The translations under genes and the position numbers were made by a program. The notes under the pieces were generated by a model. It ran no database searches. It saw only the letters and a list, made by a program, of their open reading frames with translations, and was not told the DNA's origin. A DNA stretch of 64,000 nucleotides from Macrostomum lignano (Eukaryota): the NCBI GenBank assembly GCA_002269645.1, contig NIVC01002247.1, positions 1 to 64,000 of the forward strand, given 5' to 3'. Shown in pieces: positions 11,493-49,469 of this stretch. How positions within the stretch are numbered: the stretch's first letter is position 1; each line of letters opens with the position of its first letter.

Positions 11493-12574
11493 GAAACCGG
11501 AGGCCTCTTCAAAGCCGATTAGGAAAACAGCAGATTCCGTGATATTTTCTGCCATATCTGAACTCTAGAATACCCTCCAATTGCAAATCAAATCATATCC
11601 ACGCCAAAAATCAAATTCGCGCCTTTTCCTTAAAAGCTTTTTTGAACAAAGTTGGTAACGCCGCAAGGAATTTTAATCAATTTCAATGTAGATTTACGAG
11701 CTATATGAAATAATGTATAAAAGCATATTTATACACCTATAACCTTCTGGATAGCAAATCTACTCTCTTTTTTGTTGCTTGAACAAACTACTGAAACTCG
11801 AGAATAATTCTAACTCGCAATCGCTATTTACTACTTATGAGAATTTTACTGTCGTTTTCTATCCTAAATCCACAATTACCAATCGTTAAAAAATATAAAT
11901 AAAAATATAATCTCAATAATTTTGGTTTTCTTCTCTGTCCTCTACTGTCTGTCCTTTAACAAGTAGTATGAAAAGCATATATTTTGTTATTTTTCTGGGC
12001 TTTTGCAGACGAAACCGATAACTCTATTTATTTAAAATACAAGTCTGTAGCAGCCATGCTGTCTCTGCATTCAAAAACGCTTGTCGCTTCTGTTATTTTC
12101 AACAAAATAATATCTAATACTATATTTACTCAGATAATTATAAATAAAAATATTTTTGAGCACCGCTACGCGATCCGCTTCTGCTTAAACAAAAACATTT
12201 CGGGACGAAAAACCGGAGCCGGCCTGCCTGTTTACTGCGCAGCTTTAAAAACACCGGCGGAGAGGGGGCGCCCGGTGGGCCGTGGAGGCTTAAGCAAAGT
12301 GTCTGGAGTGGCCCCAAACCCCTCACTGTCAGGCATTCTGAAGCCAGCAGTGAGCAGTATGTTCAGTGTACTCATAGGGATTTTAATAAAAGTTTTGAAA
12401 GCAGTTCTTTACATATTTTTGTTTAACTTGAAGTCGTAGTTGTGCGCGGACATGTCCCCCCCAGTAAAAGCTATGGAGGGACACGCCAATGCTTTGTCCC
12501 CCCCCCACCCCCCGTGTGACCCGTTATGGAAATAAAAAATTTTGCTTCACGGCGACAAAACATAGCGCCTGCGC

Positions 12575-14016: not shown

Positions 14017-14074
14017 GCTGTGCTTAATAGTCACGATGTACAGAATTGTGCTATCGATTGATTTTTGATTCAGA

Positions 14075-14652
14075 GACTATTTGGTCAGACAGTTTGGTCC
14101 GAGACAGTTTGGTCAGAGACAGTTTGGTCAGACAGTTTGGTCAGACAGTTTGGTCAGAGACAGTTTGGTCAGACAGTTTGGTCAGAGACAGTTTGGTCAG
14201 AGACAGTTTGGTCAGAGACAGTTTGGTCAGACAGTTTGGTCAGACAGTTTGGTCAGACAGTTTGGTCAGAGACAGTTTGGTCAGAGACAGTTTGGTCAGA
14301 AACAGTTTGGTCAGACAGTTTGGTCAGACAGTTTGGTCAGAGACAGTTTGGTCAGAGACAGTTTGGTCAGAGACAGTTTGGTCAGACAGTTTGGTCAGAC
14401 AGTTTGGTCAGACAGTTTGGTCAGACAGTTTGGTCAGAGACAGTTTGGTCAGAGACAGTTTGGTCAGAGACAGTTTGGTCAGAGACAGTTTGGTCAGAGA
14501 CAGTTTGGTCAGACAGTTTGGTCAGAGAGTTTGGTCAGAGACAGTTTGGTCAGAGACAGTTTGGTCAGACAGTTTGGTCAGAGACAGTTTGGTCAGAGAC
14601 AGTTTGGTCAGAGACAGTTTGGTCAGAGAGTTTGGTCAGACAGTTTGGTCAG
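14075..14652. repeat. 13/15-bp minisatellite (tttggtcag[ag]acag), ~40 copies
   Basis: Directly visible; the ORFs called over it are repeat artefacts. Confidence 0.95.
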
Positions 14653-14697
14653 ACTAGTAACAGAGCTCACAGGTGCAGCTGAATCTTCCCCTTGCAG

Positions 14698-19124: not shown

Positions 19125-20999
19125 TCAATTGATCAACTGATCAATCTATCAAGAATCAACTGATCAATCTATCAAGAAAAAACTGATCAAACTATCAAGA
19201 AAAAACTGATCAAACTATCAAGAATCAACTGATCAAACTATCAAGAATCAACTGATCAAACTATCAAGAATCAACTGATCAATTAATCAAGAAGCAACTG
19301 ATCAATTAATCAAGAAGCAACTGATCAATTAATCAAGAAGCAACTGATCAAACTATCAAGAATCAACTGATCAATTAATCAATAATCAACTGATCAATTA
19401 ATCAAGAAGCAACTGATCAAACTATCAAGAATCAACTGATCAAACTATCAAGAATCAACTGATCAATTAATCAAGAAGCAACTGATCAAACTATCAAGAA
19501 TCAACTGATCAAACTATCAAGAATCAACTGATCAATTAATCAAGAAGCAACTGATCAAACTATCAAGAATCAACTGATCAAACTATCAAGAAGCAACTGA
19601 TCAATTAATCAAGAAGCAACTGATCAATTAATCAAGAAGCAACTGATCAATTAATCAAGAAGCAACTGATCAATTAATCAAGAATCAACTGATCAATTAA
19701 TCAAGAAGCAACTGATCAAACTATCAAGAATCAACTGATCAAACTATCAAGAATCAACTGATCAATTAATCAAGAAGCAACTGATCAAACTATCAAGAAT
19801 CAACTGATCAAACTATCAAGAAGCAACTGATCAATTAATCAAGAAGCAACTGATCAATTAATCAAGAAGCAACTGATCAATTAATCAAGAAGCAACTGAT
19901 CAATTAATCAAGAAGCAACTGATCAATTAATCAAGAAGCAACTGATCAATTAATCAAGAAGCAACTGATCAATTAATCAAGAAGCAACTGATCAAACTAT
20001 CAAGAATCAACTGATCAAACTATCAAGAATCAACTGATCAATTAATCAAGAAGCAACTGATCAAACTATCAAGAATCAACTGATCAAACTATCAAGAATC
20101 AACTGATCAAACTATCAAGAAGCAACTGATCAAACTATCAAGAATCAACTGATCAAACTATCAAGAATCAACTGATCAATTAATCAAGAAGCAACTGATC
20201 AAACTATCAAGAATCAACTGATCAAACTATCAAGAAGCAACTGATCAATTAATCAAGAAGCAACTGATCAATTAATCAAGAATCAACTGATCAAACTATC
20301 AAGAATCAACTGATCAATTAATCAAGAAGCAACTGATCAATTAATCAAGAAGCAACTGATCAATTAATCAAGAATCAACTGATCAAACTATCAAGAATCA
20401 ACTGATCAATTAATCAAGAAGCAACTGATCAAACTATCAAGAATCAACTGATCAATTAATCAAGAAGCAACTGATCAATTAATCAAGAAGCAACTGATCA
20501 ATTAATCAAGAAGCAACTGATCAATTAATCAAGAAGCAACTGATCAATTAATCAAGAAGCAACTGATCAATTAATCAAGAAGCAACTGATCAATTAATCA
20601 AGAAGCAACTGATCAATTAATCAAGAAGCAACTGATCAAACTATCAAGAATCAACTGATCAAACTATCAAGAATCAACTGATCAATTAATCAAGAAGCAA
20701 CTGATCAAACTATCAAGAATCAACTGATTAAACTATCAAGAAGCAACTGATCAAACTATCAAGAATCAACTGATCAAACTATCAAGAATCAACTGATCAA
20801 TTAATCAAGAAGCAACTGATCAAACTATCAAGAATCAACTGATCAATTAATCAAGAAGCAACTGATCAAACTATCAAGAATCAACTGATCAATTAATCAA
20901 GAAGCAACTGATCAAACTATCAAGAATCAACTGATCAATTAATCAATAATCAACTGATCAAACTATCAAGAATCAACTGATCAATCAATCAAGAATCAA
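19125..20999. repeat. 23-bp satellite with two main variants (atcaagaatcaactgatcaaact / atcaagaagcaactgatcaatta), ~80 copies
   Basis: Directly visible; no unique spacers. Confidence 0.96.
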
Positions 21000-24655: not shown

Positions 24656-26161
24656 ATGACGGAGCCGGCGTCCCAGCCTGCGCAAGTTCAGGCGATGGAA
24701 CCGGTCCCCACCGCCGCTCCCACGCCGATTGATCACCAGCTGCTTGAGGTGCTGCCGTCGTCAGAGGCTCAGGTCGAAGTCGATGGCCAGCCCAGCAATG
24801 CCAATGAAGAAGAAGAGGAGAGCGAGGACGAGGAGGAGGATGAGGCAGCCATGGGCGACTACGATCTCAGCTGCTCGGGCTACCTGCGCCGAAAGCTACG
24901 GTCCCTCCTGCCTCCGCTCTGCTGGGGCCTCGCCGCCGCCTGTTGCTGGGCCGTGGCGATCTGGTGCGCCGGCCAGCTGGGCCGGGTTCGAGCCCCCAGC
25001 CACCAGCTGCTGTTCGCCGCTGGGGCGCCGCTCTGCCTGGTCGCCTGCGCCGGCCTCCTGCTGCGCCACTTCCAGCACGGCAACGTGGCGCCAGCTTTGC
25101 GCTACCACTGGCGCCCCATGCTGTTCTCGGCGGCGCTGCTGTGCGCCAGCTGCCAGCTTGGCCTGCGCGCCGCCCAGCGCCTGCCGGTGACGGCCGACGC
25201 AGCCTGCATTTTCTTCAGCTACGCCGGGGTCATGTCGCTGCCGCTGTGCTTCGTGCTGCAGACGGCGTGCACCAAGTACGGCCTGCTCGCTGCCGCCGTC
25301 ACGATCGCCAACCTCGGCCTGCTGGCTCGGCCGGCTTTTCTTCGGTCGGCGCTGCTGGCGGCGAGCGCCAGCAACATCACGGCTGTCGCTGAGGCTCCGC
25401 TGCCGCCGACGCCGCCGCTGGAGTTCGCCGGATGTGCCGCCGCCGCCGTTCTACTGGCTGTGGCCGTCACTGTCGTCTACTGGAAACTGGGTGGCGTCTC
25501 CTCGCTGCCGCTGCTGGCGCTGACAGCCAGCCTTCTGTGCGCCTCCTCGTTGGCGCTCCAGCCGCTGCTCTTGGCCCGGCCGCTCCGTCCACCGCCGCTG
25601 CAAGCTGCGGACGCTCCGCTGCTCTTGGCGGGAGTCGGCGGCCTGGCAACCGGCCTGCCGATGCTGCTGCACTGGCTCCGCAACGAGAGGTCACGCCTGT
25701 TCCAGCTGGGCTGGAGCCCCACCGCGTCTCTCGTGCAGCTGGCCGGCTTTTTGGTGGCCGGACAGCGGCCGGACTCCATCAGTCTGATCGCCGCGGCCCT
25801 GGTGCAGGCAGCCACAGCGCTGGTGACTCTCGGCCAGTTGCGGCACGAGTCCTGGCTGCAGTACCGAGAGGACAGCCGCTGCAAGTACTCCCGCCTCACC
25901 ATCCTGCCCGACACGCCGTTCCATCACGGCGGCAACGGCACCCTCGTCGGGAATGAAGCCGGCGCCGGCAACGGATCGGCGATGGCGGAGACCAGTTTCA
26001 ACTCCGTCACGGTGAGGCGCCAGTCGGACTCGAGCATGGGACCTAACGGGGACGCTTTCTTCCAGGAAGTGAGCCTGGCCGAGACGGGAGGCCAGCTGGT
26101 CAACGATACCGAGACGGCTAGCGGGGCGGACGGCACTTGGAAGCCGTTGAAGTTGAACTGA
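24656..26161 (+). CDS. EamA/DMT-superfamily multi-pass transporter, SLC35G-like, single exon
   Basis: Uninterrupted ORF of ~500 aa with GC3-rich codons, an acidic N-terminal tract and about 9-10 hydrophobic segments. DAACIFFS...LGLLARPAFL and VAGQRPDSISLIAAALV resemble SLC35G/EamA motifs. Confidence 0.7.
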   Translation: MTEPASQPAQVQAMEPVPTAAPTPIDHQLLEVLPSSEAQVEVDGQPSNANEEEEESEDEEEDEAAMGDYDLSCSGYLRRKLRSLLPPLCWGLAAACCWAVAIWCAGQLGRVRAPSHQLLFAAGAPLCLVACAGLLLRHFQHGNVAPALRYHWRPMLFSAALLCASCQLGLRAAQRLPVTADAACIFFSYAGVMSLPLCFVLQTACTKYGLLAAAVTIANLGLLARPAFLRSALLAASASNITAVAEAPLPPTPPLEFAGCAAAAVLLAVAVTVVYWKLGGVSSLPLLALTASLLCASSLALQPLLLARPLRPPPLQAADAPLLLAGVGGLATGLPMLLHWLRNERSRLFQLGWSPTASLVQLAGFLVAGQRPDSISLIAAALVQAATALVTLGQLRHESWLQYREDSRCKYSRLTILPDTPFHHGGNGTLVGNEAGAGNGSAMAETSFNSVTVRRQSDSSMGPNGDAFFQEVSLAETGGQLVNDTETASGADGTWKPLKLN

Positions 26162-28480
26162 TGAGCGCGATGGCAGCTTCGGAGCATTTCTAAGAAACAC
26201 TGCAGCAGCTTTAGGTGACTTGCTTTGCATGGGCTTGCAGTTGTAGATAAATGCTGATAAATTTTCCACCTTGGATTTTCTCTGAAGCCGCACGAAATAC
26301 GCGTGCTTTACTTCAAGTTCGCCTGACAGTCGGTTTCAGTATTGCTCAAATGTGTCCGTAAAAAATCTCGAGAGTGTTGAATTGGCCGAAAATTATTTGC
26401 TGCTGATACTATATCGTCTTTTCTGTCATGTGTGCAAACAAATGTATTATTTTTTGGTGGTGGCTAAAAATTATATATCTTGATTCTTGATTCTTCGAAT
26501 TACATGTATCGCAAAGCACAAGCGTCATACTTTGCTTCGATGGCATCCTTCATATGTCAGGAAAGGACCATATGTACAGAATAACAAGATATCTTTTTGT
26601 CGCCTTAATTTGAAGTGTCTTTTAATTATGGCCTTAAGCAATCAAGAATTCTAGAATCTATATAAAATGCTTTGCTATTTCACAGCGCTGATTTGACACT
26701 AAATTGTGTTGATAATTCAACGTAAAATGCTTTGAAACATTTGTATTCATTTTTTTATCTAGACAGAAAAAGTATCATGACCACGCGCCGGCGAATTTTT
26801 GAGTGGAAAACTTCATAGTTAATTTCTTCCGATACGTTCATATCCTAGACCAGCAAGACTTGGAAACAACAACAAAAAGAACAGAAGGCAGATATTTCTT
26901 CTGCATGTAGGAGCGTGTATGGGTATGAGAATGGATACATGTACATATAAGGCAGACAGAGTGGAACTACTCGTACAAGGAAGTATAATTTACATCGTTC
27001 ACTTTCATGTTATGGGCATCCGTTATTAAAGCTATGTATCAATCATACTAAGCAAAAGACTTTTGGCACGGTATGTGATCCAGCCAACCCTAGGCTTTTC
27101 CTACTACTACCTGTGGCTCTATATAGTGCCTATTGAGTGCCTTTTTACATTTGTTACAGACCGTTGAAACCGAAACCGAGTTAAAAATCAAATTATTAAT
27201 TAATCTCTAGAAAAGCTCGCATGAGCAGAATTATTGTAAAAACCACAATGTCATTAGACGTGCTAGGACGACGGGTTTTACTTTTCTGGTAGGGTATTTC
27301 ACTACCTGCATCATTTAGATATTTTTACTATTCATTCGATTCTAAACCCAGGCCGGGTTCGTTCAAATTAGCGGGTGAAATTTTATGGAATGATTAAACA
27401 AAATATCTTTGATCAGCCTCTTAAGGTTGCAGAAAAATCCTTAATGAAACTATTTCGGCGTATGCAGTCCTTCAATTCTCAAAATCAAATCACAAATGAC
27501 TTTCTAATAGCAAATACTGAACAATGCACAATTTTTATTTCTGAAATACGTGGCGTGGAATCTGTAAATTCTGTTATGTGTTTCCACATATCTAAACAGT
27601 TTCCATATTAAACAATAATTAATCAAATATATTTCCACATAATTAAACGCTAGCCGCAGCCACAATAAATACTCAATAAATATCAATGCTCTAGTCTATT
27701 CAAGTATAAAATTTAAATTAAGGCTCAAAATAAATGATTGCTTCTAAATTGATAAAAAATAGGTTGATTGCGGCCATAATAAGCCTATTAATTTTAGACT
27801 AGTACTAAATGCTTTAAAAGCGTCATACTTTGCTGAGCTGTAATTGTTAGAGCCACTTAACTAAGCCACCTAAAATATATCTATTCTAGTTGTATATATA
27901 TACTGGAAACTAAGTTTAATAAGACAATGACAAGTACTAAATAAGCCTAGATATAATAATTTGTAGTATAATAATAAATGTATATTTTTATTTTTTGTCA
28001 TCAATTTTGCAATTTACCCTTGGTCTATCATAATTTATGCTAGCTACATCAATCAGGTTGGTTGGCATTGGCAACTGCCTATGCATGCCTAAAGCCAAGG
28101 GGTTATTATTTTAACTCTAAGGTAAGGATGACAAAAGCCAAAAAGGTATAGATAAAAAATATTTGGTTTATATTTTGATTTTATTAGGCCTATTCTAACC
28201 ACTTGGAAACATATAACCCTATCTGCTAAAGATAATTTTTTTCTAATAAGGAATAGCTTACATAGGCTTAGACCAATAGCAAGTCAATTCACTGAAAGTA
28301 AGTTTTTTTGCCAAAGTTTTGTGATATAGGCCTATGCCCATTGTAAAATGAACAAGTAAACAAATTACATTGCAATTTTAAATTTTAAAATGTTAAAACA
28401 TTAAAATGAAGGTCTTATTTTTCTAATTATCTCCTAGACTAGAGCCTATATCCTACCCTATATGGCTATACTATGTGCAC

Positions 28481-29328
28481 TAGGGAATATAATCTTAGGA
28501 TTCTAGGATCTTAGAATCTTGGGATTAGGCCTAAATCTTGGGATTCTGAATCCCAGGAATATCGTTAGACCTAAATCCCAAGATTAAATCCTAGGATCAC
28601 AACTGTCTAGGATTGACCATTGAGATCCTAATACCATTTTGCAATAATTCAATCATTCATTTTCAAGTTAATATCTGCAGCTAAGATATTTTTCAATTAA
28701 AAAATGATAATATAGTTGTCCTACTTTGATTTTTTAAACTTTTGAGCAAGTGAGTAGAAGGTTATAATAAGGCTATAGAGATAAATAAATAGAAGCTATT
28801 ATTAGGTTATAAAGGTATTTAAAGTGTAATAACATAACTATATAATCTTTACCTTCAAAATTCTTTGGCTATGATTGGGATTAGAACAGTAGGACCTTAC
28901 TATTGGACTATAACCCAAGCAATCAATTCTCTATCTAGGGTAGATGCTCCTGGGAAAATAAGTTCTGATCTCTTTTAACCCTGGCCTAGTATTAGTATCT
29001 TAGGCCATAGCTCTATAAGGTATCATTCTCCAGGTTATATCACAATCAAATGTGATTTTAAGCTAATACTAACAAGTAAAAAAGCATATCTATTATGCTA
29101 GCCTATATATCACACTCCAACTCAGAGCTTACTGTCAGTTTCTTGTTTTCAAAATCTTTTATTTTATTCTACTTTTATCTGATCATTAAAAGCCCTTTAA
29201 AATTAGATTAGATAGCTTTGTAAACCAACTGATACCAATAAAAATTAGAAACCTTTTAATCCTAGGATCCTGGCTAAATTTTCTCTAGGATTCTAGGATT
29301 GGCAAAACTTGGGATTTTATATTCCCTA
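28481..29328. mobile_element. Degenerate hAT-type MITE with 11-bp TIRs and imperfect 8-bp TSD
   Basis: TAGGGAATATA (28481-91) / TATATTCCCTA (29318-28). Flanks ATGTGCAC (28473-80) vs ATATACAC (29329-36). Subterminal degenerate (t/c)gggatt/ctaggat motifs at both ends. Confidence 0.65.
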
Positions 29329-30307
29329 ATATACACTTGTATGATTTATTCAAATTGTCTTTTAATACATATTGGCTCAATTGCAAAGCCCATCAGTGGC
29401 TGTTGTTGCACCTTAATATTTTATAGATAATAATAAAAGCCTATTCTTCATTTAAGTGATTGTTTAGATATTTTCTTATTAAAAATATATAAAACTTAGA
29501 CTTTACAACTAAATTATAAGACTTCCTAGGTTTTTTATAGATTTTTTATATTGGTGCTATAAATATTAGATTTTTTGGCAATAAATACTTTTTTAAAATA
29601 CCTACAAATAGTTTTTAATTGTTAGTTTGTTTGTTTTAATCCCAATATCAAGTTATTCATTGAGCATTGCCTAGAAACTATATCTGTTTTTCATTATATT
29701 CTTCCTAGACTAGGAAGATAAATAGGTAAATAATATTAGATTTGCCCATGGTTCTCTTTATAATTGCAAATTTTACTCTAATTTTATAAATATTGCCAAT
29801 TTGACATCTCAACTTTCCTTTATTGTTTGGCATCTTGTCAATTGCCATTAAAGTCACTGTCTAATACTAATCCTAACTTTACCTTTGAGTATTGAAATTT
29901 TTGAACTCCTTGAATCATAGCTTCTTATCAAAACTCAAGAAGCCTTGAAGACATGACCTTGTCTTGTTGTCAAGATATTCTTGTTATAAAAGAAGTTCCA
30001 ATTCTGAAGATCCCAATTTGAAAATAGATAATGGTTTACAATTTTGTTAATATTATTATATCACTCAGTAGTACGGATACCCGAGTGTGCAAAAGTATGG
30101 TTATTGAATCATCCCAGTCACTCACTTAAACATTTCAGTCATTGTTTATTTATTAAATTTGACTCAACAGAAACAGCCTACAGCTCTGCTAGCACTGACT
30201 GCAGGCATATCAGCAGATAAGTGAGCTATTTTAAGCAGCTCAGTTCTTCAGCATTGAGCCCAATAGTCAGTGACGCACTGCCAACAGTAAAGAAAGCGGG
30301 GGCAGTC

Positions 30308-33300
30308 ATGGCCGATCCAAACGCCAGTCGCTACCAACAGTACACGCCAGGATTCTACTATCCCCAGCAGCAGCAGCCGCCTCATGCCAGGCAGGACTCG
30401 GAGCCCTTCTGCCCCACCTCCGTGCCGCTCCCAGACAGGAACGGCTCGCACTTGTCCACCCCGGCTCAGGCGGAGGACCCGCCAAGCGGCGGCCAGGCCA
30501 GCGCCGGCTTCCAGTACCGGGACAACTCGGCCGGCTCCGAGTTCTCACCCGCACCGTCAGCTGCTGGATTCAAACCATATAACCGTTCTGCTGCTGGTAA
30601 CAATAATGCTCAATTGGCTTCCTCTTATGGACAAGGTACTAACGCGTCCAGCTTCCAGCCGCTTCATCAGCAACAGCAGCAACAGCTGCAGCAACAACAG
30701 CAGCAGCAGCAACAGCAGCAGCAACAGCAGCAGCAGCTGCAGCAACACCACAGCGCCGCCAGCAGCTTGGCAAAGCAGTATGACGACTATTTTGACAGTT
30801 GCATTCTGGCCAACCCGCAACAGGCCGACTATTATAGGCAGCAGAAGCAGGAGTACAGGCAGTACTTTGCCCAGCTCGGAGTCTTCACTGCCTGGGTGAG
30901 TGCGATGGGGCTGTGACTGGCGCTACCCCTCTCAAGCAGGGTGTTACAGCGACCCTGACTTCTCGTATTTCAATTCTGTAACCCAAATCGTGATAGAAAT
31001 ATTACTATTTAATTGCTTACCCGTGGGCCAGCTCTGCAAGTTAAGCAAACTTGCCCGCGGTTAGTACGCAGCTGAAATTTGCTGTTTGCGTCAACTGCAG
31101 TTCACCCTGCTGTGATTGGGCAGCAGCTCTGAGCTGCAGTTCACTCTGCTGTGATTGGGCAGCAGCTCTGAGCTGCAGTTCACCCTGCTGTGATTGGGCA
31201 GCAGATCTGAGCTGCAGTTCACTCTGCTGTGATTGGGCAGCAGCTCTGAGCTGCAGTTCACCCTGCTGTGATTGGGCAGCAGCTCTGAGCTGCAGTTCAC
31301 TCTGCTGTGATTGGGCAGCAGCTCTGAGCTGCAGTTCACCCTGCTGTGATTGGGCAGCAGCTCTGAGCTGCAGTTCACTCTGCTGTGATTGGGCAGCAGC
31401 TCTGAGCTGCAGTTCACTCTGCTGTGATTGGGCAGTCGGGTGATGCAGAGTGAAGTAGCGACCCCCCCCCCAAAAGTGCCAGCGCTGCACCTGTTGCCTG
31501 GCCAATTTGATTTTAAAAGTTAGCCCTGCCAATTTTCATCAAAGACTCTCAAAGACTTGCTTGATAGTCAACAGAGAATAATATCTATCACATTCAATGC
31601 CAGGGCGACACCTCGTCAGAGGCGGAGCCTGCCGGCCGCTGCACGCCGCTGAAGTTCAGCTTGCCGCACGCCCGCCTGTCGCTCTCCTGTCCTGGCCTGG
31701 CCGTCCAGGTGCCACCGTCCCGGCCGGACGAGGGCGAGCCGGCCAGGGTGCACCTGTTTGACAGCGCCTGTCTAGCGGCCGACTGGGACCGGGTGGACTT
31801 CTCCGCTTATCCCGGACCGCTGGTGCCCGGCGAGACACTGAAAAGCGAAGTTCGGGCCTTCCTGAACGCCAAGCTGGTGGAGATGCACGAGCGGCTGGCC
31901 GACACCGACTGGGAGGACGCCGCCCTGCTGATCGGCTTCCTGGACTTCCTTGTTAGGAATAATGGCGTGAGTGTGGCAGCTGGCTGGGTACTCTCTGATT
32001 TTTAAGACCTGGATAGACCTGTGTCCCCGAAATCCCCTATAAGGTCCTGTGCTCTAATCCTAAAACTTAAAATCCCCTTTTTATTAGAGGCTGGGGGCTA
32101 TGTGCACCCTGGCGTACTTTAAGCGACATTGTCGCACAACACAAGCGCGAGGATACGTACGCAGTCATGCGCAGAGGCACACACTCACACGAGTGTACAG
32201 CGGCCCAACTTTATTTATCGTTAGGCATGTACACTTCACTGTGCCCTGGGGGTTCGCCCTCTAGGCCGCTAATTGCACGAGCAGAGCCAAGCCGAGATTT
32301 CAATTTAGCTCCGGATTAATGTGACTGCACTTGGAATCGAGCCTGGGCCGCGGGAACATCAGAACGCCGCGCTTGATTACTAGGCAATGGCACCTTGCTA
32401 AAATCCTGAATTTTAGAGTCAGAAGGTCCTGAGTTCGAATATTTTGAGACTACAAAAATTCACTAATTCTCACAAGTCTCCAATCTGTGTTCGAATGGGG
32501 GGGGGCTGTAGGGCTAGCTACTCATAGGGCTAGCTACTCATAGGGCTAGCTACTCATAGGGCTAGCTACTCATAGGGCTAGCTACTCATAGGGCTAGCTA
32601 CTCATAGGGCTAGCTACTCATAGCGCTAGCTACTCATAGGGCTAGCTACTCATAGGGCTAGCTACTCATAGGGCTAGCTACTCAAGTCCTCGACTTGTGA
32701 GCGTTCAGACTTCTTTATTTCACTATGGGATTATGGAGTTTCGAGCCCCAGGCCACTGAAATCCCCAACTGATAGAGTCAGAGTCAGGGCCAAAATTGTC
32801 AGTGGCATCCCGACCCCCTCAACCGCAGATCGCAATGGGCAGCGACCTGTCCGACCTGCTGCTCGAGGGCCACGAGCTGCGCACCGCCACTACCGCAGCT
32901 ACAATGCTGCCTCCGGCCTTGACGCCTCCGCCGCCGACGTTGCCATGGACGCCTTCGCGTCGCTGCCACCAAGCGAGCCGGCGAGCGGCCGCGCCAGTCC
33001 GAACTCCGCCCAGCAGCAGCAGTCAGAGCTGGCCTCTGCGGCCGCTGCCGCTCTGTCCCAAGCCAGCCGTCAGCGCGATGACGCCGAGGCTGAGGCCGAG
33101 AAGCGGCTAGACAGATTCCGGAAGTTGCTGATGTACGGCCGGAAGCGCGAGGCGCTGGAGTACGCTAGTAGGCGCGGCCTGTGGGGCCAGGCTCTGTTTC
33201 TGGCTCACCAGATGGACGCGGGGCTGCACGCTCGGATGCTGGAGAGATTCGCTGCCAGAGCCATGCAGCCCGGGGACCCTCTGGTGGCGCTGTACCACTT

Positions 33301-36300
33301 CATGCAGGTCAGTGGGATCGATTTTGTTGCTTGGGTGGGAGTGGGGCTTAGCGGGGATGGGAGAGTGGGAGAGTCTTCACGCCAGATCGACAGGCTGGTC
33401 GAGGTGGCATCGAGCGTCGGTTTGATCGTCAACACGCTGAAGACCGAGGTGCTGATTGTGCCGGCCGACATCCCAGCGGACCTGACGTGCCGCGGCGCAG
33501 ACGGGCAGACGACCAGGCTCGCACGCTGCCAGCGGTTCACCTACCTCGGCGGTCTGATGCCCCACGTGGAAGAGGACCTCCGGCGGCGCAGAGGACTTGC
33601 CTGGGCGGCCTTTCGTTCGATCCGAGCCGTCCTCCAGTCCGAAGCGCTGCCCGACCGCCAGAGGGCTCGGCTGTGGCAGGCGGTGGTCGAAACCGTCCTG
33701 CTATACAACGCCGAGACGTGGACGCTGACGGCTACGCTGGAGCGGCAGCTGGACTCGGCGCACTCAGGGCTGCTCCGTGCGGCCTTTCGAGTTGACGAGA
33801 GCGTCGGGACCGAGGCCCTGTACGATCGGGCCAAGCTGCAGCGCCCGTCCATCATTCTGCGCCGGCGGCGACCTCAACTGGCGGGTCACGTGATCCGGGC
33901 TGAGGGCTACTGCCCCCAACCTGTTCAGGACGTCCTGCTGCTCACCTTGCAGGGTCCGTTCAGACGGGGTCAGGCCCGACCCGTCGATACGTGGACTGCC
34001 TGCTGTGCGACGCTGGGGCGCCCACACTGCCAACGGAGCGGACTTTGTTCGCTCCCAGGCTCTGCGGCGCGCCATCTGACGCGCCCTGTTCTAACTGCGA
34101 CTGTACATGCGGGGTCGCGTATTTTGTTGTTGTTGTTTGTTGAGAGTGGGGCTTAGCGGGGTGGACTCAGCAGTGGGATAAAAGAGGATGGGGAAGGGGA
34201 ATAAAATGATATTATTACCCCGTGACGCGCCCAGGGCCGGGAGCCGGAGCTGGCGGACCTGCGGCAGTGGCGGCCCTTCCTGGCCATGCTGCTGGCTAAC
34301 CGGGCTGACCGACCCCGCCTGGCCGCCGCCGCCGTCGCCCGCCTCGGCGACCGCCTGCTGGCCGCCGGGCGCCTCTACGCCTCCCAGCTGTGCCACCTCC
34401 TTGCCGGCGGCTGCGTTGCCCTTGACGACGCTACAGACGTCGACGGGGACAGCTTCGATGCCAAGTCGCTGGACCCGTTCCGGCCAGGCGGGCCCATCGA
34501 GCTGATCGGCTTCGACTCCGCCGCTGCCTCCGTCGCAGCCTCTGCCGGCTCGGCTTCGTCTGTTGCGGCGGCCGTTCCCAACGAAGCCGTGCAGCTCACC
34601 GAGGTCTTCGAGTTCGCTGTCGGCCTCCGCGATAGACGTCGCCGGCTCGACGGCGTCTGCCAGCGCCGCTTGTCGGCACGCCTGCTGCCCTACAAGTTTC
34701 TGTACGCTGTGCGGCTGCTGGACGCCGGCCTGAGCGAGGAGGCCTTCCGCTACTGCCGCAACGTCGGCCGCTGCCTGGTGCAACTGGACGGCTCCGAAGA
34801 GATTAACAAGTCCTCCACCCATTTTGAGTCGCTGATGTTGGAGATTCTGCGACTGGCCGAGCGGCTGCGCTGCCATCCGGCAGTGTCCGAGCACCTGGAC
34901 ACTGATTGGCTGGCTGAGCTGGCCGAACTGGCTGCTGGGCGGCGCAGGTGGCGACAGCAGCAGCAGATTCTGCCGCACCGGCCGTTCCAGCCTCCGCCTC
35001 CTGGGAATCTGCATCATGATCCCGCATCCTGGCGGCCGCCTCTGCAGCAGCAGCAGCAGCAGCCTCCTGTCTCGTGGACGCAGCAGCAAAGCTCGGCGAC
35101 GCCTGCCGCTGCAGCGTCTGCATCCTCGGTTCAAGTGGCATTTGACGCATTCGATGAGCCGGTATGACCTAACTCCGCTTAAACCCCCATATAGTTACTC
35201 GCATCAGAGTCACTTGCGTTGCCCCAGAGTCGTTTCAGGTAACACAGACAAAATAGGAAAGAAGTGACTCTAGATGACTCAATGGACAAGATGCCAGGTT
35301 ACCAGTGGCTAAAAATCGTCAAAGAGTCGCATAAGAGTCAATTTGAGGTGTTATATGACTCTGGGGCCGTAGAGTCTGATCTGAAGTGTGCTGCAGTCGC
35401 TGTAGAATCACGGCTTTGCAACTCACGTGATGCGCTCGTGACTCAACAGTTGCCTCTCCGTCGCATTACGGTTGTTTGAGACGTTTTCAACGAGCCAACT
35501 CCAAGGCACACAGAATTCCCCTGTACACCCTGTGTGAGCGTGTGTATGAGTGCGTTCCTGTGTACAGTATTGGCGCGCTTGTTTGTGCTCGGGAGTCTGT
35601 GGAATGAGCAGAATTGCTTCAGCGCTCCGGTTGTGGGACCGATGTCGCCGAAGGCTTTGCGCCATGGTGGCCGCAGTCCTCCTGCATTATTATCTTATGT
35701 ACACAATCCACCTCGCTGGTTTCCCATCTCAGGCCTCGCAGATCCCCGACTATCAGCGCCGGCGCGCCCTGTCCAGCAGCGCCTCGTCGCATGGCGGCGA
35801 ATCGTCGGCTGTCCAGGGCGCCGGCAGCGGCGCTCATTCGCGCCAGACATCGCCGGCACCGTCGTCGCCGCCTTCGTCGCCGGTGGCGCGACCACCGTAT
35901 GCGGTGAGTCGCGTGTACTGTATTACACTATATTCTTAGTCCTGTGGCTTTAGCACCCTCCCCTCCCCACCAAGCCTTGGCTGAATCCCAGATAATGTGG
36001 TGCCACTCAAAATTTTTTCATCTCCGCAGCCTCCGCCTGCCCCACCGCCTCAGCCGCCGCCGCTGCTGAAGTCGCAGCCTCCGCCTCAGCACCCGGTTCC
36101 GCCTGTGAGCCGTGGAGCCGCGAGGAGTCGGGATTCCAGCCTGAGCTCAGGCATGAGCCACCCGCAGCAGCGGCAGCAGCAGCAGCCCTATTCGCAGTAC
36201 CCAAGCCAGTCTGACTCGCACAACCAATACCAGCTCGGCCAACAGCGCTATCCCGTGCCGCAGTCCCAGCCTGAGGAGGCAGCAGCTCACGAGGAGCATC

Positions 36301-38529: not shown

Positions 38530-39345
38530 CAATCCACATCCTTCCATTGTCACGCCAGCTGTCCCACATCCTTCCATTGTCACACCAGCTGTCCCACACT
38601 CTGCAATAGGCACACCAGCTGTCCCACACCCTTCCATTGTCACACCAGCTGTCCCACACCCTGCAATTGTCACACCAGCTCTCCCACACCCTGCAATTGT
38701 CACACCAGCTCTCCCACACCCTTCCATTGTCACACCAGCTGTCCCACACCCTGCAATTGTCACACCAGCTCTCCCACACCCTTCCATTGTCACACCAGCT
38801 GTCCCACACCCTTCCATTGTCACACCAGCTCTCCCACACCCTTCCATTGTCACACCAGCTGTCCCACACCCTGCAATTGTCACACCAGCTCTCCCACACC
38901 CTGCAATTGTCACACCAGCTCTCCCACACCCTTCCATTGTCACACCAGCTGTCCCACACCCTGCAATTGTCACACCAGCTCTCCCACACCCACACCAGCT
39001 CACCAGCTCTCCCACACCCTTCCATTGTCACACCAGCTGTCCCACACCCTTCCATTGTCACACCAGCTCTCCCACACCCTTCCATTGTCACACCAGCTGT
39101 CCCACACCCTGCAATTGTCACACCAGCTGTCCCACACCCTGCAATTGTCACACCAGCTGTCCCACACCCTGCAATTGTCACACCAGCTCTCCCACACCCA
39201 CTCCAGCTCACAAGCCCACACCAGCTCTCCCACACACTTCCATTGTCACACCAGCTGTCCCACACCCTGAAATTGTCACACCAGCTGTCCCACACCCTGC
39301 AATTGTCACACCAGCTCTCCCACACCCTGCAATTTTTACACCAGC
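38530..39345. repeat. 30-bp minisatellite (cacaccagct[gc]tcccacacc[cttcc/ctgca]attgt), ~27 copies
   Basis: Directly visible; lies between the convergent 3' ends of Sec16 and the NCOA-like gene. Confidence 0.95.
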
Positions 39346-39979
39346 CGCCCCAAATAAGCACAATACAGAAAGTCGGTCTGGCATTTAATTATCGCTAACA
39401 ACGGCTAAAGAAAACGTAATGAAACTGCATGAAAATGAAAATGTCACTCTAAAAAGGAAAAGCTAAAATGTATTTACAGACGCCAAAATAATATGGCTTA
39501 GTTGACAATTAATAAAATTTGATGAGGCAAAATAATGCAAATGTTAATACAAAATTAGATATTCTAATAAAACAATAAAAAGACCAATAATGAAAATATA
39601 TACAAAATAATGCTCATGCTACTAATAGTAATATAATGAGAGAAAATAGCCATTCGCTTTGCGCAGCTCAATTTCACAGCCTGCTACAACAGTGAAATAA
39701 CAAAAAACTTTGCAAACCGCAGAGTTGCAGCAGCCAATGGGGATGAGAAATCAAACAATATGGTATGGCTCACTGCCTGTGCTCATTCAATAAATACACG
39801 ATATGGACTTTACACGCGACTGAAAGCAGCAAATAAAAGACAACACAAATCTAAGTAATCAAGCACAAAGCAGGGAACTCTACGGGGAAAACTATTTATT
39901 TGTACATCTGGCACCTGCACATTAGATGAAACAATATGTACATACATGACACTGCTGCTCCTACCATGAGAACGGTACA

Positions 39980-40322
39980 CCCGTTGAAAACGTTACCGTG
40001 ACAAGAATCGCTAGAGTGATTGCAAACAACTGGGAGTGACGCTGGCGACTCTGTTGAGTCACGAGGGCATCACGTGAGTTGTAGAATCGTCAGAGTCCCG
40101 AAAAAGTCGTCCAAGAGTTTTGTTAGCGCTTAACTTTCTACTAACTCGCGTAAACTAAATATTGTTGCTATAAATGCAAAATGCGTTTTTTAATTCATAA
40201 AGTGACGCTGATCTCTTTGAACACTTTTTAGCGACTTGTACCGAGAAACATCATCGTTTGAGTCGTCTAGAGCCACTTACTTCCTATCTTATCTGTGTTA
40301 CCTGCAACGACTCTGGAACGCT
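39980..40322 (-). mobile_element. Interspersed repeat copy B, inverted relative to copy A
   Basis: ctgttgagtcacgagggcatcacgtgagttg and cttcctatcttatctgtgttacctgcaacgactctgg are reverse complements of copy A segments. Confidence 0.65.
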
Positions 40323-40607
40323 TATTGGCCTTTGGTACCGTTTTCATCGAGATAGTAGTGTATGAATTGTATATTTCACTATATTTCATACTACTATCAC
40401 CCACTTAGTAAAAAGTAGTGTGTTAAGCGACTGACTTCTAACTATAGCTACAGCTTCTAACTATAAAGAAAGGAAGGCATTTCAAAGCTAATTCTAAGCA
40501 TATTAAAAGTAAATTAACACGAAATCGAATCACGAAGCGAGCGCAAGCAATGGCAATAATAGCTTGTACATCGAGCGTAAGTCGCCTTCCCCACGCTTTG
40601 CAGCATC

Positions 40608-42742
40608 TCAGCTGCTTAGCAGCTTTTCAAGTAGGCCGCCTCCGCTGTTTGACGGCGGCGCGGCCGGGGCGGACGGCGAGGCTCCGACGCCGCCGGATCC
40701 GCTGCCTGCGCTGCCAGGCGTGGTGGAGTCCGGCGCCGGCTGCCTGTGCCGCTCCTCCATATCCAGAATGATGTCCAGCACTACATCTTCGGGCAGTTCG
40801 GCGCTGCCTGCAATGTCCACCGGCTGCGGCTGCTGCGGCGGAGTTGGTGGCGGCAGCGGCGGAGGCGGCTGCTGAATCAGCGCAATGGTCACAGCCGGCT
40901 GTTGCTGCAGCAGCTGCTGCTGCTGCTGTTGCTGCTTTAAATCATCGATGCTCTTCAAGATGCTGTCCAGCACGCCGGTCTCCTCCCCTCCGTTACCGTT
41001 GTCGCCGCCTCCAGCCGCGATGGCCGCGGGTGCAGCCGGTCCGCGATTCGCAGCAGCCGACGAAGCCGCCGAAGTCGTTGCCGCCGCTGCCGCCGAATCG
41101 CTCAGCAGAGCCGCCAGCAGCTGCGTGCCGCCTGGTGGCTTTCGCTTGCCTCCGCCGAGCTGCTGCGTGCTGCTGTCCACGTCTCCGCCTCCACCGAGTT
41201 CCTCCGGCCAAGACGGCTGGCGCTTTCTGCCCGGCGTGCTCGGCGTGGCCGTGGTGGAGCTCACCTGCTGCTGCTCGGCCATTCGAGTCTGCGTCTCCTT
41301 GGCGCACAGCAGCTCCTGTGTGGGATCGGGGTTGGGAGATGGGAGTTGTGCGCTGTGTGCCCAGCAGTACAGGATGCGCGACCTAGACTAGGGACTGCCC
41401 CCCACACAGATTTCTGTGTGTGCTGCCAGCCCCCAACCCCAGATTTCTGTGTGCGCTGCCAGCCTCCCAACCCCAGATTTCTGTGTGTGCTGCCAGCCCC
41501 CAACCCCAGATTTCTGTGTGCGCTGCCAGCCTCCCAACCCCAGATTTCTGTGTGTGCTGCCAGCCCCCAACCCCAGATTTCTGTGTGCGCTGCCAGCCCC
41601 CAACCCCAGATTTCTGTGTGCGCTGCCAGCCTCCCAACCCCAGATTTCTGTGTGCGCTTCCAGCCCCCAACCCCAGATTTCTGTGTGCGCTGCCAGCCTC
41701 CCAACCCCAGATTTCTGTGTGCGCTGCCAGCCTCCCAACCCCAGATTTCTGTGTGCGCTTCCAGCCCCCAACCCCAGATTTCTGTGTGCGCTGCCAGCCT
41801 CCCAACCCCAGATTTGTGTGCGCTGCCAGCCTCCCAACCCCAGATTTCTGTGTGCGCTGCCAGCCTCCCAACCCCAGATTTCTGTGTGCGCTGCCAGCCC
41901 CCAACCCCAGATTTCTGTGTGCGCTGCCAGCCTCCCAACCCCAGATTTGTGTGCGCTGCCAGCCTCCCAACCCCAGATTTGTGTGCGCTGCCAGCCTCCC
42001 AACCCCAGATTTCTGTGTGCGCTTCCAGCCCCCAACCCCAGATTTCTGTGTGCGCTGCCAGCCTCCCAACCCCAGATTTCTGTGTGCGCTGCCAGCCTCC
42101 CAACCCCAGATTTCTGTGTGCGCTGCCAGCCCCCAACCCCAGATTTCTGTGTGCGCTGCCAGCCCCCAACCCCAGATTTCTGTGTGCGCTGCCAGTCCCG
42201 CCACTAAAACTTCAGCAGCGAACCTGCAGCGTGTTGGATGTGAGGCTGACAGCGCATGAGTGCTGGCTCGGCCCATTGAGTAGCTTCATCAGCAGGGAGG
42301 CCGGCTGCTGGCCGCTGGTTGTCAGGGTTGATAGCGATGATGAAGCGTCCGTCGTACGCGGCAGCGCCGACAGGAACAGCGCCGGTGCCGGAGTCTGCGG
42401 CTGAGCCTGGGGAGGCTGCGGTTGCTGCTGCTGCTGAGAGTCCGACCACAAAGCCAGCATGCGGTTGCGCAGGGCCTCCGCCCGGTCCGGGTCCTGCTTG
42501 GCGCAGCTCTTGTACAGGGCGCCCAGGCTGAGCAGCTCCTGGCGTTCGCGAGGCCCCAGAGAGGGACGGGGCTGCGGCTGCGGCTGCTGCTGCAGCGACG
42601 CCGCCGGTGGGCTGCTGCCGCTTCCGGAGCCGACCCGGCGCAGCAGACTGGCGGACGGAGCGCCGCTGAGATCCGCTTCCGAGTCGCAGAATCTGCGCGA
42701 ATAAAGCATATCCTACTGTTTAACTAGCTTAGTAGTAGTAGC

Positions 42743-42801
<59 letters not shown>

Positions 42802-42902
42802 TAGTAGTAGTAGTAGTAGTAGTACCAGTAGTAGTAGTAATAGTAGTAGTAGTATTAGCATTAGTAGTAGTAGTATTAGTATTTAGTAATAGTAGTAGTA
42901 GC

Positions 42903-42955
<53 letters not shown>

Positions 42956-43053
42956 TAGTAGTAGTAGTAGTAGTACCAGTAGTAGTAGTAATAGTAGTAG
43001 TAGTATTAGCATTAGTAGTAGTAGTATTAGTATTTAGTAATAGTAGTAGTAGC

Positions 43054-43094
<41 letters not shown>

Positions 43095-43116
43095 TAGTAG
43101 TAGTAGTAGTAGTACC

Positions 43117-43163
<47 letters not shown>

Positions 43164-47440: not shown

Positions 47441-49469
47441 TGTTGAATTTCAAGATGTTAGCAGGGTGGCAGAACAGCTTTGCAATCTGTTACATGGCCA
47501 AGCTGGTTCAAGCTGAAAACTGCACGTTTTTTTGGCTTGAATTGGCTAAATATTGAATACATCATTTACAGAAGTAGACTGAGAAATATGGTTTGCAGTT
47601 ATTATCATAGGCTAGGTTTTTTTTACTGCGTCATGACATATCCTACTTGTACTTCATTTGAAGTATCAATAGTTATAATTATTGGGATAGGGTCACATAG
47701 GGTGGAGCAAAGCCTAGTGATACAGTGTGGTACTAAGATTGAATTCAAGTTTAGTCATATTTGGAGCTAAATTTGAATCTTAGCTTGGTTTTGCTTATGC
47801 AATTTATGCCCTTGATGATCAACTTTTAAGGCATAATAAAGTGTATATATGCTTAAATATAAATAAAGCTAGGCTACTATATACTTTTATATAAAAACCT
47901 ATTACATAACTATATATCCAAAGGCTCCCTATTGGAATACAATTTCAAATCCTATGGATATATGGCATACATTTGTAAACATGCTTAGGCACAGTAAATA
48001 TTATATATAAATATTATTAATTTTATAGTAGTGCAAGATGGAATCAAAATTTTATAACTTTGTATAGCATATAGTCATATACTATATATGCAGTTATTCC
48101 AATAGGGCATAGGCTTATATCTACTTAGGGAAATTGGTAGAGTGGCAGTGATACTACATTAAGTATAAGGGTATAATATATAATCATTTTATTTAATTCA
48201 AGAAAGATAAGAATTAACATTAATATACATTTTAAAAAGCTCTAGAATGCAAGTCTAATAGAATTTTATAAGAAATAAATTGATTTATATTATGAAACTT
48301 CTTATTTTTTAAATTTAAAAGAAAAAGAAATTATTAAGGGGTTAAGGCATTAAGCCACTTGACTTAATTTCCTTTATAATTATCTATAGAATATTATAAG
48401 ATAATCATATATGTATTATATACATCTATATAAACAATTATTTATAACCATTTATTTAAATTACAAAAAAGTTATAAATAATCTTAGAAATATTAGATCA
48501 AAGAAGATGAAATATACAAATACAAAAAATATAGGCCTAACTATATAAGATTAAGAATATAAAAAGTTATAAAAATATAAAGAAAACAAAACTATCATAG
48601 GCATAGGCATAAAAACAATTTAAAAACATCAAGTTACAATGTTAATGGAAGAATTATCATAGGCACATGCACATCTCGTTATTAAAAACTTGCACGTTAG
48701 AGCAAACAAAGCTTATAGGCTAGGGGCCTATCCGCTATCCACTATACTTAAATAAAAAATCCATTTAAAGATATTTACTTAACGTTTTTAATATTAGGCC
48801 TAATACTAAAAGGCAAAAGATACAATAAAATACATTTAACTTAAAGATAAATGTAAGTTAGGCCTACACCTTCGTCGCAGCCACATTGAATCTGACTGGG
48901 CCTGGTTTACAACAAATTTTGTTATGTTTCTTTAGGCGATTCACAAGCTGTTAACGTTCTGTACGCTGAGAAACGCTGACTTCATAAATTCCGAATATTC
49001 ACTGGTTTTAGGCATAATCAGCAACCTAAAATCTTTCCTAGGCCTACTCGTTCTTGAACAATCCATCGTCTACTGGTCTGAGTTTGACCTGTGGACAAGT
49101 GAAGTGGAATGACGTTACACACTATTTTCTTAGAAATGAGATGGAGTTCATTAGAGAACGTATATTCACGTATATACAGTGGTCCTTGCGTATATTTTCG
49201 TATTGCTGTAGTTCAGTAATGCAGTTAGCATGGTCTCGAGAAATCACAATTTTCTAAATGGCGAAACCTACTTTAGTGCTTCTACTGCTGTCGAGGCATA
49301 CGAGATTTTTGCTAGAGCAAGGACCACTGTGTGTAGTCCTTGCGCTAGAGTAGTAGTATATTCTGCTGTTTCGATCATTTCGTTTCGTTCGATCATCAGT
49401 CGATCATTTGTTAAAAATTACGCAAAAATGGTGATTCTGGTTCATCCCACCAAGGTAATGAGACATGGA

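Follow-up and report, generated by a model that had tools for sequence, protein, structure and literature searches.

We analysed a stretch of 64,000 nucleotides (hereafter, the window) from Macrostomum lignano (assembly Mlig_3_7, NIVC01002247.1:1-64000) and found in it an A+T-rich block, practically devoid of CpG dinucleotides, directly upstream of the first coding exon of the Sec16 gene. The block has a sharp left edge and is shared by subgenome copies of the locus. In old repeat fragments whose changes could be polarised, alignments with relatives outside such blocks show massive C>T change on both strands, with CpG as the foremost target, and this hypermutation regime is absent from the neighbouring DNA. 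We hold with moderate confidence that the block is a domain-restricted CpG desert made by two-strand C>T erosion, most likely through deamination of 5-methylcytosine (5mC) in the germline.

A CpG-free block upstream of Sec16 and its relatives

The block (27823-30073) measures 2251 bp, has a GC content of 0.29 and contains a single CG, at position 28563, as a preliminary description of this DNA had reported. Base composition predicts 46.7 (observed/expected ratio, o/e, 0.021; Poisson P(≤1) = 2.5e-19), and the count stays extreme (P = 1e-16) when the o/e of 0.87 of other A+T-rich DNA is used instead. Chance or low complexity was thus rejected as the source of the CG lack (P about 1e-19, in a non-tandem block). 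The CGs that border the block lie at 27821 and 30074. Two other A+T-rich stretches, said in the preliminary description to keep their CGs, indeed do so (CpG o/e 1.18 in 11560-12150 and 0.96 in 39400-40500). A+T content is about equally high in the left flank next to the block (26300-27822), where CpG o/e is nonetheless 1.00, so that the left edge of the block is sharp.

The same description had remarked on abundant TA, CTAG and TAGGCC. This was right for CTAG (19 occurrences vs 9.1 expected under a first-order Markov model) and for TAGGCC and its complement GGCCTA (4 each vs 0.5 expected), to which GCCTA can be added (11 vs 2.4). TpA, however, shows no excess for the composition of the block (o/e 1.02), although it is more frequent than in the rest of the window (0.74-0.87). 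The TpA/ApT ratio is 1.05 and the (CpA+TpG)/(ApC+GpT) index 1.31; AG/CT is 1.14-1.22 and TG/CA only about 1.0.

Several trivial origins could be discarded. The block contains no open reading frame (ORF) of at least 100 amino acids, matched no Rfam family and is present in two subgenome copies, so that coding, organellar or foreign DNA was rejected. Tandem Repeats Finder detected no array in 27823-30073, which speaks against a minisatellite. We found no convincing terminal inverted repeats (TIRs) or target-site duplication at 27823/30073, and BLAST revealed no copies beyond the subgenome copies in a sample of ~225 kb of M. lignano DNA, a sample small enough that high-copy relatives may exist elsewhere in the genome. 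The block as a whole was therefore not regarded as a transposon or miniature inverted-repeat transposable element (MITE); only two internal pieces are element-like, a foldback at 28434-28617 and a fragment of an old repeat.

Diverged copies of the locus occur on two more contigs of the assembly, NIVC01003390.1 (L001) and NIVC01000795.1 (L007). M. lignano is a neopolyploid with three subgenomes, S, L1 and L2, which are structurally far apart (32-36% divergence, long insertions counted; PMC10733133), and the three copies match these. L007 ends ~400 bp short of the Sec16 block, so that comparisons of this block involve the window and L001 only. The homeologous block of L001 (13185-15152) lies in the same place, with 93% identity and a CG-free gap of 1,970 bp. 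Across ~2 kb of block, the two copies have zero CpGs that are shared or simply gained, and in the left flank 41 CpGs are kept between copies and 10 differ.

The Sec16 block belongs to a recurrent class. Our sample, which is partly redundant, combined the window and the two other copies of the locus with four unrelated loci. Using as criterion non-tandem, CG-free DNA of at least 400 bp, we identified six independent blocks: the Sec16 block, a second one in the window (47631-48676, block 2) and four in one of the unrelated loci, L006 (3742-4281, 5943-6690, 23212-24839 and 25742-26261). L007 has more CG-free stretches in its counterpart of the block-2 region, and the three other unrelated loci sampled have no CG-free blocks. 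All the blocks have a common composition (GC 0.24-0.30, CpG about 0, GpC 1.55, CC/GG about 1.5), and their CpG o/e of 0.00-0.02 makes them clear outliers when compared with GC-matched non-tandem DNA (0.87). They are not copies of one repeat. BLAST with word sizes of 7-11 and a seed-and-extend search in a purine/pyrimidine alphabet found homology between blocks only in two short old repeats, and a single repeat family behind them was rejected, as these two families are all that they have in common with other loci.

The blocks are related to gene 5' ends in four of the six independent cases. The placement of the Sec16 block given in the preliminary description holds: the ATG at 30310 corresponds to the start annotated for the homeologous gene, and Pfam TPR_Sec16 matches lie in the exons downstream of it. 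In three cases, 80-240 bp separate the block from an annotated ATG downstream, namely at Sec16, at a minus-strand PAS-domain gene (block 2) and at a gene encoding 1406 amino acids in L006, and an acceptor-like AG is found 35-100 bp beyond each of these blocks. A fourth block is situated in a first intron, directly after a 10-nt ATG micro-exon. Since spliced-leader (SL) trans-splicing affects about 39% of M. lignano transcripts (PMC5730564), the blocks could equally be outrons or 5' introns, or DNA upstream of promoters. A block precedes the ATG in only 3 of the ~13 independent gene starts sampled, and the other ten have normal upstream CpG.

Block 2 also has a homeologous copy (L007 8017-9801), likewise CG-poor, and the two copies differ by further A+T-rich indels. 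On inspection of the alignment, the gene-proximal ~700-900 bp of block 2 appeared nearly identical between subgenome copies. A segment of ~300 bp in L007 (~8640-8935), absent from the block in the window, contains one CG and, by eye, inverted-repeat-like ends (GCTTGCATGCATGGCAGC...); possibly, a MITE has inserted here. The remaining long CG-free gaps of the window, that is, all but 47631-48676, are minisatellites with a CG-less unit (10244-11171, 14070-14653, 19134-20999, 38534-39352, 42730-43307 and 43989-45277). The locus is dense in minisatellites, with units of 15-53 bp repeated up to 80 times, and most of them are intronic or intergenic; the stretch 42730-43307 is a (TAG)n microsatellite, with n about 190.

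Direction, context and timing of cytosine loss

Two old interspersed repeat families, detected by sensitive BLAST, have copies both inside and outside blocks and made it possible to polarise the changes. For family 1, we took as ancestral those sites at which two non-block copies, 8.7% apart, agree. Relative to this state, the copy in block 2 has C>T or G>A at 31 of 75 G/C sites (41%) and T>C or A>G at only 1 of 68 A/T sites (Fisher p = 1.6e-9 for the asymmetry). Nine transversions, six of them likewise GC>AT, complete the 41 changes. Both strands were affected within one fragment of 143 nt (18/34 C sites and 10/33 G sites), and nucleotide identity rises from 68% to 93% when the sequences are recoded as purines and pyrimidines. 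Changes other than GC>AT amount to 4/143, comparable with the non-block copies, which argues against a much greater age of the block copy.

The alignments also show a marked effect of the neighbouring bases. Loss in family 1 decreases with the 3' neighbour from CpG (8/12, 67%) and CpA (10/20, 50%) to CpT (5/18, 28%) and CpC (4/16, 25%; p = 0.024 for CpG+CpA vs CpT+CpC). On the 5' side, a G is protective, with loss at 5/26 GpC sites vs 54-58% with the other bases (ApC 7/13, CpC 9/16, TpC 7/12). Former CpGs have become TG, CA or TA in 6 of 7 cases judged against the non-block copy in L005 and in 6 of 9 judged against that at 32192 in the window. Family 2 is represented by the block copy L6c, by the Sec16-block fragment 27991-28060 and by a non-block copy with 12 CpGs (L006 3468-3717). 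These 12 CpGs correspond in L6c to TG (6), CA (3), TA (1) and other dinucleotides (2), and the two that can be aligned with the Sec16-block fragment are both TG there.

This spectrum generates most of the odd composition of the blocks. We mutated 64 kb of ordinary M. lignano sequence in silico until GC reached 0.274, with weights of 4 for CpG, 1 for CpA, 0.4 for CpT and 0.3 for CpC. The simulated DNA approached the blocks in CpG o/e (0.01 simulated, 0.01 observed), TG/CA (0.93 and 1.05), TpA (1.09 and 1.01), TC/GA (0.86 and 0.80) and CTAG density (5.0 and 4.7 per kb), and adding the protection by a 5' G reproduced the AC/GT and TC/GA deficits too. The simulated spectrum thus accounts for the abundant TA and CTAG and for the missing TpG/CpA excess; a TG/CA ratio near 1 is what the simulation predicts, because CpA is also a target. 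Uniform C>T change, change at CpG only and CpA-dominant weights typical of repeat-induced point mutation (RIP) all failed. The RIP weights left a CpG o/e of 1.8 and a TG/CA of 0.29, far from the observed 0.01 and 1.05, and, together with the index of 1.31, they contradict the flavour of fungal RIP (CpA>TpA) that the preliminary description had evoked.

DNA outside the blocks follows another regime. Recent substitutions were polarised from the three subgenome copies along Sec16, in DNA 0.4-6 kb downstream of the block. Over all sites change is balanced, with an implied equilibrium GC of 0.60. At non-coding intron sites, GC>AT (0.0213 per site) and AT>GC (0.0241 per site) imply an equilibrium GC of 0.53, and C>T is even across contexts (CpG 6/401, CpA 5/360, CpC 8/393, CpT 5/350). 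Exons outside the blocks show the strongest GC-favouring substitution (equilibrium GC 0.72). We calculated that a 2.25-kb block at equilibrium under the rates of other A+T-rich unique DNA would hold about 50 CpGs. A hAT element ~800 bp from block 2 is similarly unaffected, with normal CpG. It occupies 49470-54056, with perfect 15-bp TIRs (CAGGGGTGTCGGAAC) and an intact ORF of 1062 amino acids that carries DUF4371 and hAT dimerisation domains, and its absence from the L007 subgenome copy identifies it as a recent insertion. The N-terminal part of its ORF traverses a 33-bp minisatellite. The idea of a sharply bounded domain of cytosine hypermutation at the 5' end of Sec16, put forward in the preliminary description, therefore agrees with the C>T/G>A change of the polarised repeats, strongest at CpG, and with the sparing of the neighbouring DNA.

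As to timing, most of the erosion probably predates the split of the subgenomes, because the copies share the eroded state. Differences of the CpG-gain type between block copies number 2, where rates from other A+T-rich DNA predict about 6-9 (p about 0.007-0.05 according to the scaling); this suggests, though not decisively, a removal of new CpGs that still continues.

Parts of the block and gene context

The features of the locus on which the analysis rests are collected in Table 1.

Table 1 Blocks, their parts and reference sequences (window coordinates unless a locus is named)
Feature	Position	Strand	Basis or remark
CpG-free A+T-rich block upstream of Sec16; non-tandem, non-coding, single-copy except for subgenome copies	27823..30073		CG counts, tandem-repeat mask, ORF, Rfam and BLAST searches
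Left flank, internal control; GC 0.345, CpG o/e 1.0	26170..27822		Composition
Family-2 old interspersed repeat fragment; 0 CG	27991..28060	-	Alignment to non-block copy L006 3468-3717 (12 CG)
TAGGCCTA palindrome	28185..28192, 28327-28334, 28526-28533		Motif counts
Foldback, MITE-like hairpin segment (~190 bp)	28434..28617		Gap in L001 alignment; RNAfold; composition
Proximal part of block; candidate promoter/regulatory segment or 3' part of 5' intron/outron	29601..30073	+	Divergence between copies
Block-to-ATG segment; 4 CGs	30074..30309	+	Two acceptor-like AGs (30137-30138, 30169-30170) that may serve in cis- or trans-splicing (sequence inspection)
Sec16 first coding exon, CpG-rich	30310..30905	+	ORF and homeologous gene annotation; 3' end approximate
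Family-1 non-block copy in Sec16 intron; GC 0.52, 9 CG	32192..32338	-	Reference state
Block 2, non-tandem; GC 0.245, 0 CG vs 15.5 expected	47631..48676	-	CG counts; 190 bp upstream of PAS-domain gene ATG (47440)
Family-1 copy in block 2, C>T-eroded derivative; GC 0.26, 0 CG	47741..47885	+	Alignment to non-block copies
Family-1 non-block copy; GC 0.51-0.52, 7 CG	L005 16909-17062		Reference state

The Sec16 block is not uniform. Divergence between the subgenome copies is 2.7% in its proximal part and 7.9% in the distal one (27823-29600). The foldback, present in the window copy and absent from L001, holds the only CG of the block and is itself CpG-poor (1 vs 7.4 expected). RNAfold gave a minimum free energy of about -70 kcal/mol over 28425-28625, and it is possibly a miniature foldback element. 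We also noticed that it is rich in CCTAGG and GGGATT and that a 14-nt piece of it appears again at 29286.

The blocks are also enriched in the palindrome TAGGCCTA, a signature of their class that often has the form TTAGGCCTAA, with a density of 1.1-1.4/kb vs 0.16/kb in other A+T-rich DNA and 0.02/kb elsewhere, that is, 7-fold and about 50-fold, respectively. Besides those in Table 1, sites occur in the window at 48532, 48795, 48859 and 49039, in L006 at 24528 and 24566, and in L007 at 5560, 7239, 7331, 8421, 8537, 8601 and 8822. The flanks of the sites are not conserved, and on alignment inspection the motif itself was no better conserved between copies than expected of any sequence there. A binding site, a targeting signal and a remnant are all conceivable.

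The genes around the block agree with its source: an ORF just upstream (24656-26161) has 97% identity to an M. lignano protein, and a downstream ORF similar to transient receptor potential (TRP) channels, with ankyrin repeats, has 100% identity to another. At 55805-59434 there is a single-exon gene for a TRP-like channel with ankyrin repeats and an ion-transport domain, a member of a sizeable family of M. lignano paralogues with 29-62% identity on at least five other contigs, loci L003-L006 included. A further single-exon gene at 4590-9313 is polycystin-1-like, with GPS, PLAT and PKD channel domains. The ORF 32945-34156 contains the beginning of the Sec16 central domain and then runs in frame into ~33350-34150, which resembles by eye the C-terminal part of a reverse transcriptase of the long interspersed nuclear element type ('...FTYLGG...LLYNAETWTL...') and is probably an intronic retroelement fragment. 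Finally, the three subgenome copies are mosaic (L007 28856-34813 vs L001 15474-21497 vs the window). L007 and L001 share 99.2% identity over the 3' part of Sec16, which drops to 95.6% towards the 5' end of the gene; taken over the entire region common to all three, L007 comes nearest to the window (98.9%). This pattern suggests gene conversion or recombination between subgenomes, or else chimeric scaffolds, 36% of the assembly having been reported as chimeric (PMC10733133).

Candidate origins of the blocks and known systems

The history that we favour would start from ordinary non-coding DNA, partly old transposon debris, with a GC content of about 0.5. Heavy C>T change on both strands, in the order CpG >> CpA > CpT ≈ CpC and with cytosines protected by a 5' G, would have lowered GC to about 0.28 and eliminated essentially all CpGs. 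The chemistry would be deamination of 5mC in a patch densely methylated in the germline, fully at CG and partly at CH, with a retained DNMT1/DNMT3 system as the putative methylating agent. Most of this would have happened before the split of the three subgenomes, and new CpGs may still be removed. Such a block, methylated amid DNA that for the most part is not, would be a vertebrate CpG island in reverse. Extending the repeat fragments to their surroundings, we infer that the whole block was made by the process that eroded them.

The context order CpG > CpA > CpT ≈ CpC is the one expected of cytosine-5 methyltransferases that also act to some extent on non-CG sites, and this fit, together with the retention of DNMT1, DNMT3 and low-level 5mC in the organism, is the reason why we prefer 5mC deamination. 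Both enzymes and the low-level modification are documented in M. lignano, and the genomic pattern of its 5mC was called unknown in 2022 (PMC11292947, PMC9246332, PMC10658182). Moreover, a 2026 preprint reports that methylation-linked CpG loss has AG/CT, and not TpG/CpA, as its main compositional correlate (bioRxiv 10.64898/2026.09.02.747768), which the AG/CT of 1.22 in the block would match.

Several observations weigh against this explanation. The polarised fragments are short (143 and 253 aligned nt), only ~70 bp of them lie within the Sec16 block and the remainder in sister blocks, and they come from a small and partly redundant genome sample. By our estimate, ~99% of the CpGs can be removed only if CpG is lost at least 50-100 times faster than the average site changes, which is several times the strength of 5mC decay in mammals, and the loss of 25-50% of non-CpG cytosines is much above what ordinary CG methylation yields. 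Any methylated patch must also be very sharp-edged, since both exon 1, ~240 bp away, and the left flank are fully CpG-replete. Recent divergence of the blocks is only modestly raised (5.1% vs 3.7%), and an apparent excess of recent transitions over transversions (1.67 vs 0.93 in a global alignment) was discarded after a BLAST-based comparison with more data (1.39 vs 1.13, p = 0.45), so that the process may be largely historical. In addition, the palindrome TAGGCCTA, observed at 1.4/kb, reached only 0.03-0.06/kb in the simulations, and the excess of GCCTA, GGCC and CC/GG was likewise produced by no erosion model; erosion was thus rejected as the origin of these motifs.

Because ordinary 5mC decay would be weaker than the effect seen and would spare more of the non-CpG cytosines, a RIP-like burst stays a serious rival, even if we judge it rather unlikely. 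An enzyme of the DNMT family or a cytosine deaminase would have hypermutated a targeted patch directly, during a single germline episode or several, with no need for stable long-term methylation. Change at 41% of G/C sites on both strands, with CG>TA double hits, goes far beyond usual 5mC decay; its age, largely before the subgenome split and followed by modest divergence, fits a burst, and the sharp edges of the blocks fit as well. However, the context is CpG-first and not CpA-first, with RIP weights failing in simulation, and we saw no duplication trigger, the three subgenome copies of the surroundings and the young hAT element being untouched. The lack of a TpC/WRC preference and of strand coordination makes APOBEC/AID enzymes unlikely agents, and RIP itself is regarded as fungal (PMC12543289). 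It is a bold guess, to which we give limited credence, that M. lignano has an animal counterpart of RIP, dependent on a DNMT or driven by another enzyme, which would irreversibly hypermutate the cytosines of discrete kb-scale patches, often at gene 5' ends with transposon debris, with TAGGCCTA possibly serving as a targeting or boundary signal.

About 75% of the M. lignano genome reportedly consists of repeats with fast turnover (Wasik et al. 2015). The blocks might then be relics, the oldest neutral DNA surviving from a past genome-wide regime that was A+T-biased and depleted CpG, while the remainder is either younger, as are transposons and minisatellites, or constrained. We consider this improbable, even though a repeat-rich, fast-turnover genome with large structural divergence between subgenomes (PMC10733133) would favour it, as would the 9 transversions of the family-1 block copy (vs about 2 per non-block lineage) and the only mildly raised present-day divergence of the blocks. 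The regime outside has neither A+T bias nor a CpG effect, and ~3-4 CpGs per copy should consequently have appeared since the split, vs 0-1 seen. The family-1 block copy does not look much older by its changes other than GC>AT, an equally A+T-rich flank common to both copies keeps a CpG o/e of 1.0, and the link to gene 5' ends is left unexplained.

We find it quite improbable that intrinsic composition and selection produced the blocks, either through CpG-poor mobile or foldback elements that favour gene 5' ends or through promoter CpGs being selected away (which might, for instance, shield an essential gene from silencing by methylation), or both. The CpG-poor foldback insertion that is polymorphic between copies, the A+T-rich indels between block-2 copies, and the position of the blocks at 5' ends with highly conserved proximal parts point that way. 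Nevertheless, the bounds of the Sec16 block lack TIRs and target-site duplications and no other copies of blocks occur in the sample; the repeat fragments in the blocks derive from GC-normal, CpG-containing relatives; individual selection against ~47 CpGs over 2 kb is implausible; and 10 of 13 gene starts do without any upstream CpG depletion. Least probable of all, in our view, is a cold spot for GC-biased gene conversion, in which A+T-biased mutation acts everywhere and GC and CpG are restored except in recombination-free patches: the kb-scale GC swings (0.25-0.70) and the GC-favouring substitution outside blocks, greatest in exons, would suit it, but the left flank combines low GC with normal CpG, which separates CpG loss from GC content, and the edges are sharp within tens of bp.

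The M. lignano genome papers that we searched do not describe domains of this kind. If they proved to be genome-wide, a free-living flatworm with low-level methylation would carry, beside its genes, sharply bounded, CpG-free and C>T-eroded islands, inverted with respect to vertebrate CpG islands and mutated to a degree otherwise known only from fungal RIP. They would reveal where DNMT1 and DNMT3 act or acted in a phylum whose methylation is essentially undescribed, provide a sequence-only footprint for mapping germline-silenced patches, and make RIP-like mutational genome defence in animals directly testable. A role of the Sec16 block in genome defence or gene marking, as raised in the preliminary description, is speculation. 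In practical terms, the blocks sit where promoters and 5' introns or outrons are picked for transgenes, which matters for annotation.

Among known systems, methylation-driven CpG decay resembles the blocks in its CpG>TpG/CpA transitions, perhaps in a rise of AG/CT, in the contrast with CpG-replete neighbours and in the presence of DNMT1 and DNMT3 in the organism. It typically leaves a CpG o/e of about 0.2-0.5, vs 0.01-0.02 in the blocks, which have also lost 25-50% of their non-CpG cytosines. The block is, moreover, small, sharply bounded and located at a gene 5' end, unlike the gene-body or genome-wide methylated DNA of invertebrates and vertebrates, and its own methylation is putative. Fungal RIP shares with the blocks a massive two-strand C>T/G>A change that turns GC-normal sequence and transposon fragments into sharply bounded A+T-rich blocks, with CpC least affected and DNMT-family enzymes suspected. 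RIP depends on a DNMT of the RID/Masc1 type, acts before meiosis and is triggered by duplicated sequence, to which it stays confined except for short linkers. In contrast, RIP prefers CpA, whereas the blocks lost CpG and then CpA (RIP index cut-off below about 1.03, vs 1.31 here), are single-copy in the sample, next to triplicated surroundings and a young hAT element that were spared, and occur at gene 5' ends in an animal host without a known RID homologue. The RIP-like TpCpG hypermutation of basidiomycetes (PMC3318451) is closer in context, although the blocks show no preference for a 5' T. Clustered C>T change in DNA is also the hallmark of AID/APOBEC activity (kataegis, edited retroelements), which is strand-coordinated and directed at TpC or WRC, whereas here both strands are hit, the 5' side contributes only the protection by G and the 3' neighbour is the main determinant. 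Finally, vertebrate CpG islands are, as the blocks, kb-scale compositional islands at gene 5' ends whose CpG contrast is thought to mirror germline methylation, but with the opposite polarity: the blocks of M. lignano are CpG-free, A+T-rich islands in a CpG-replete genome, found at a minority of genes.

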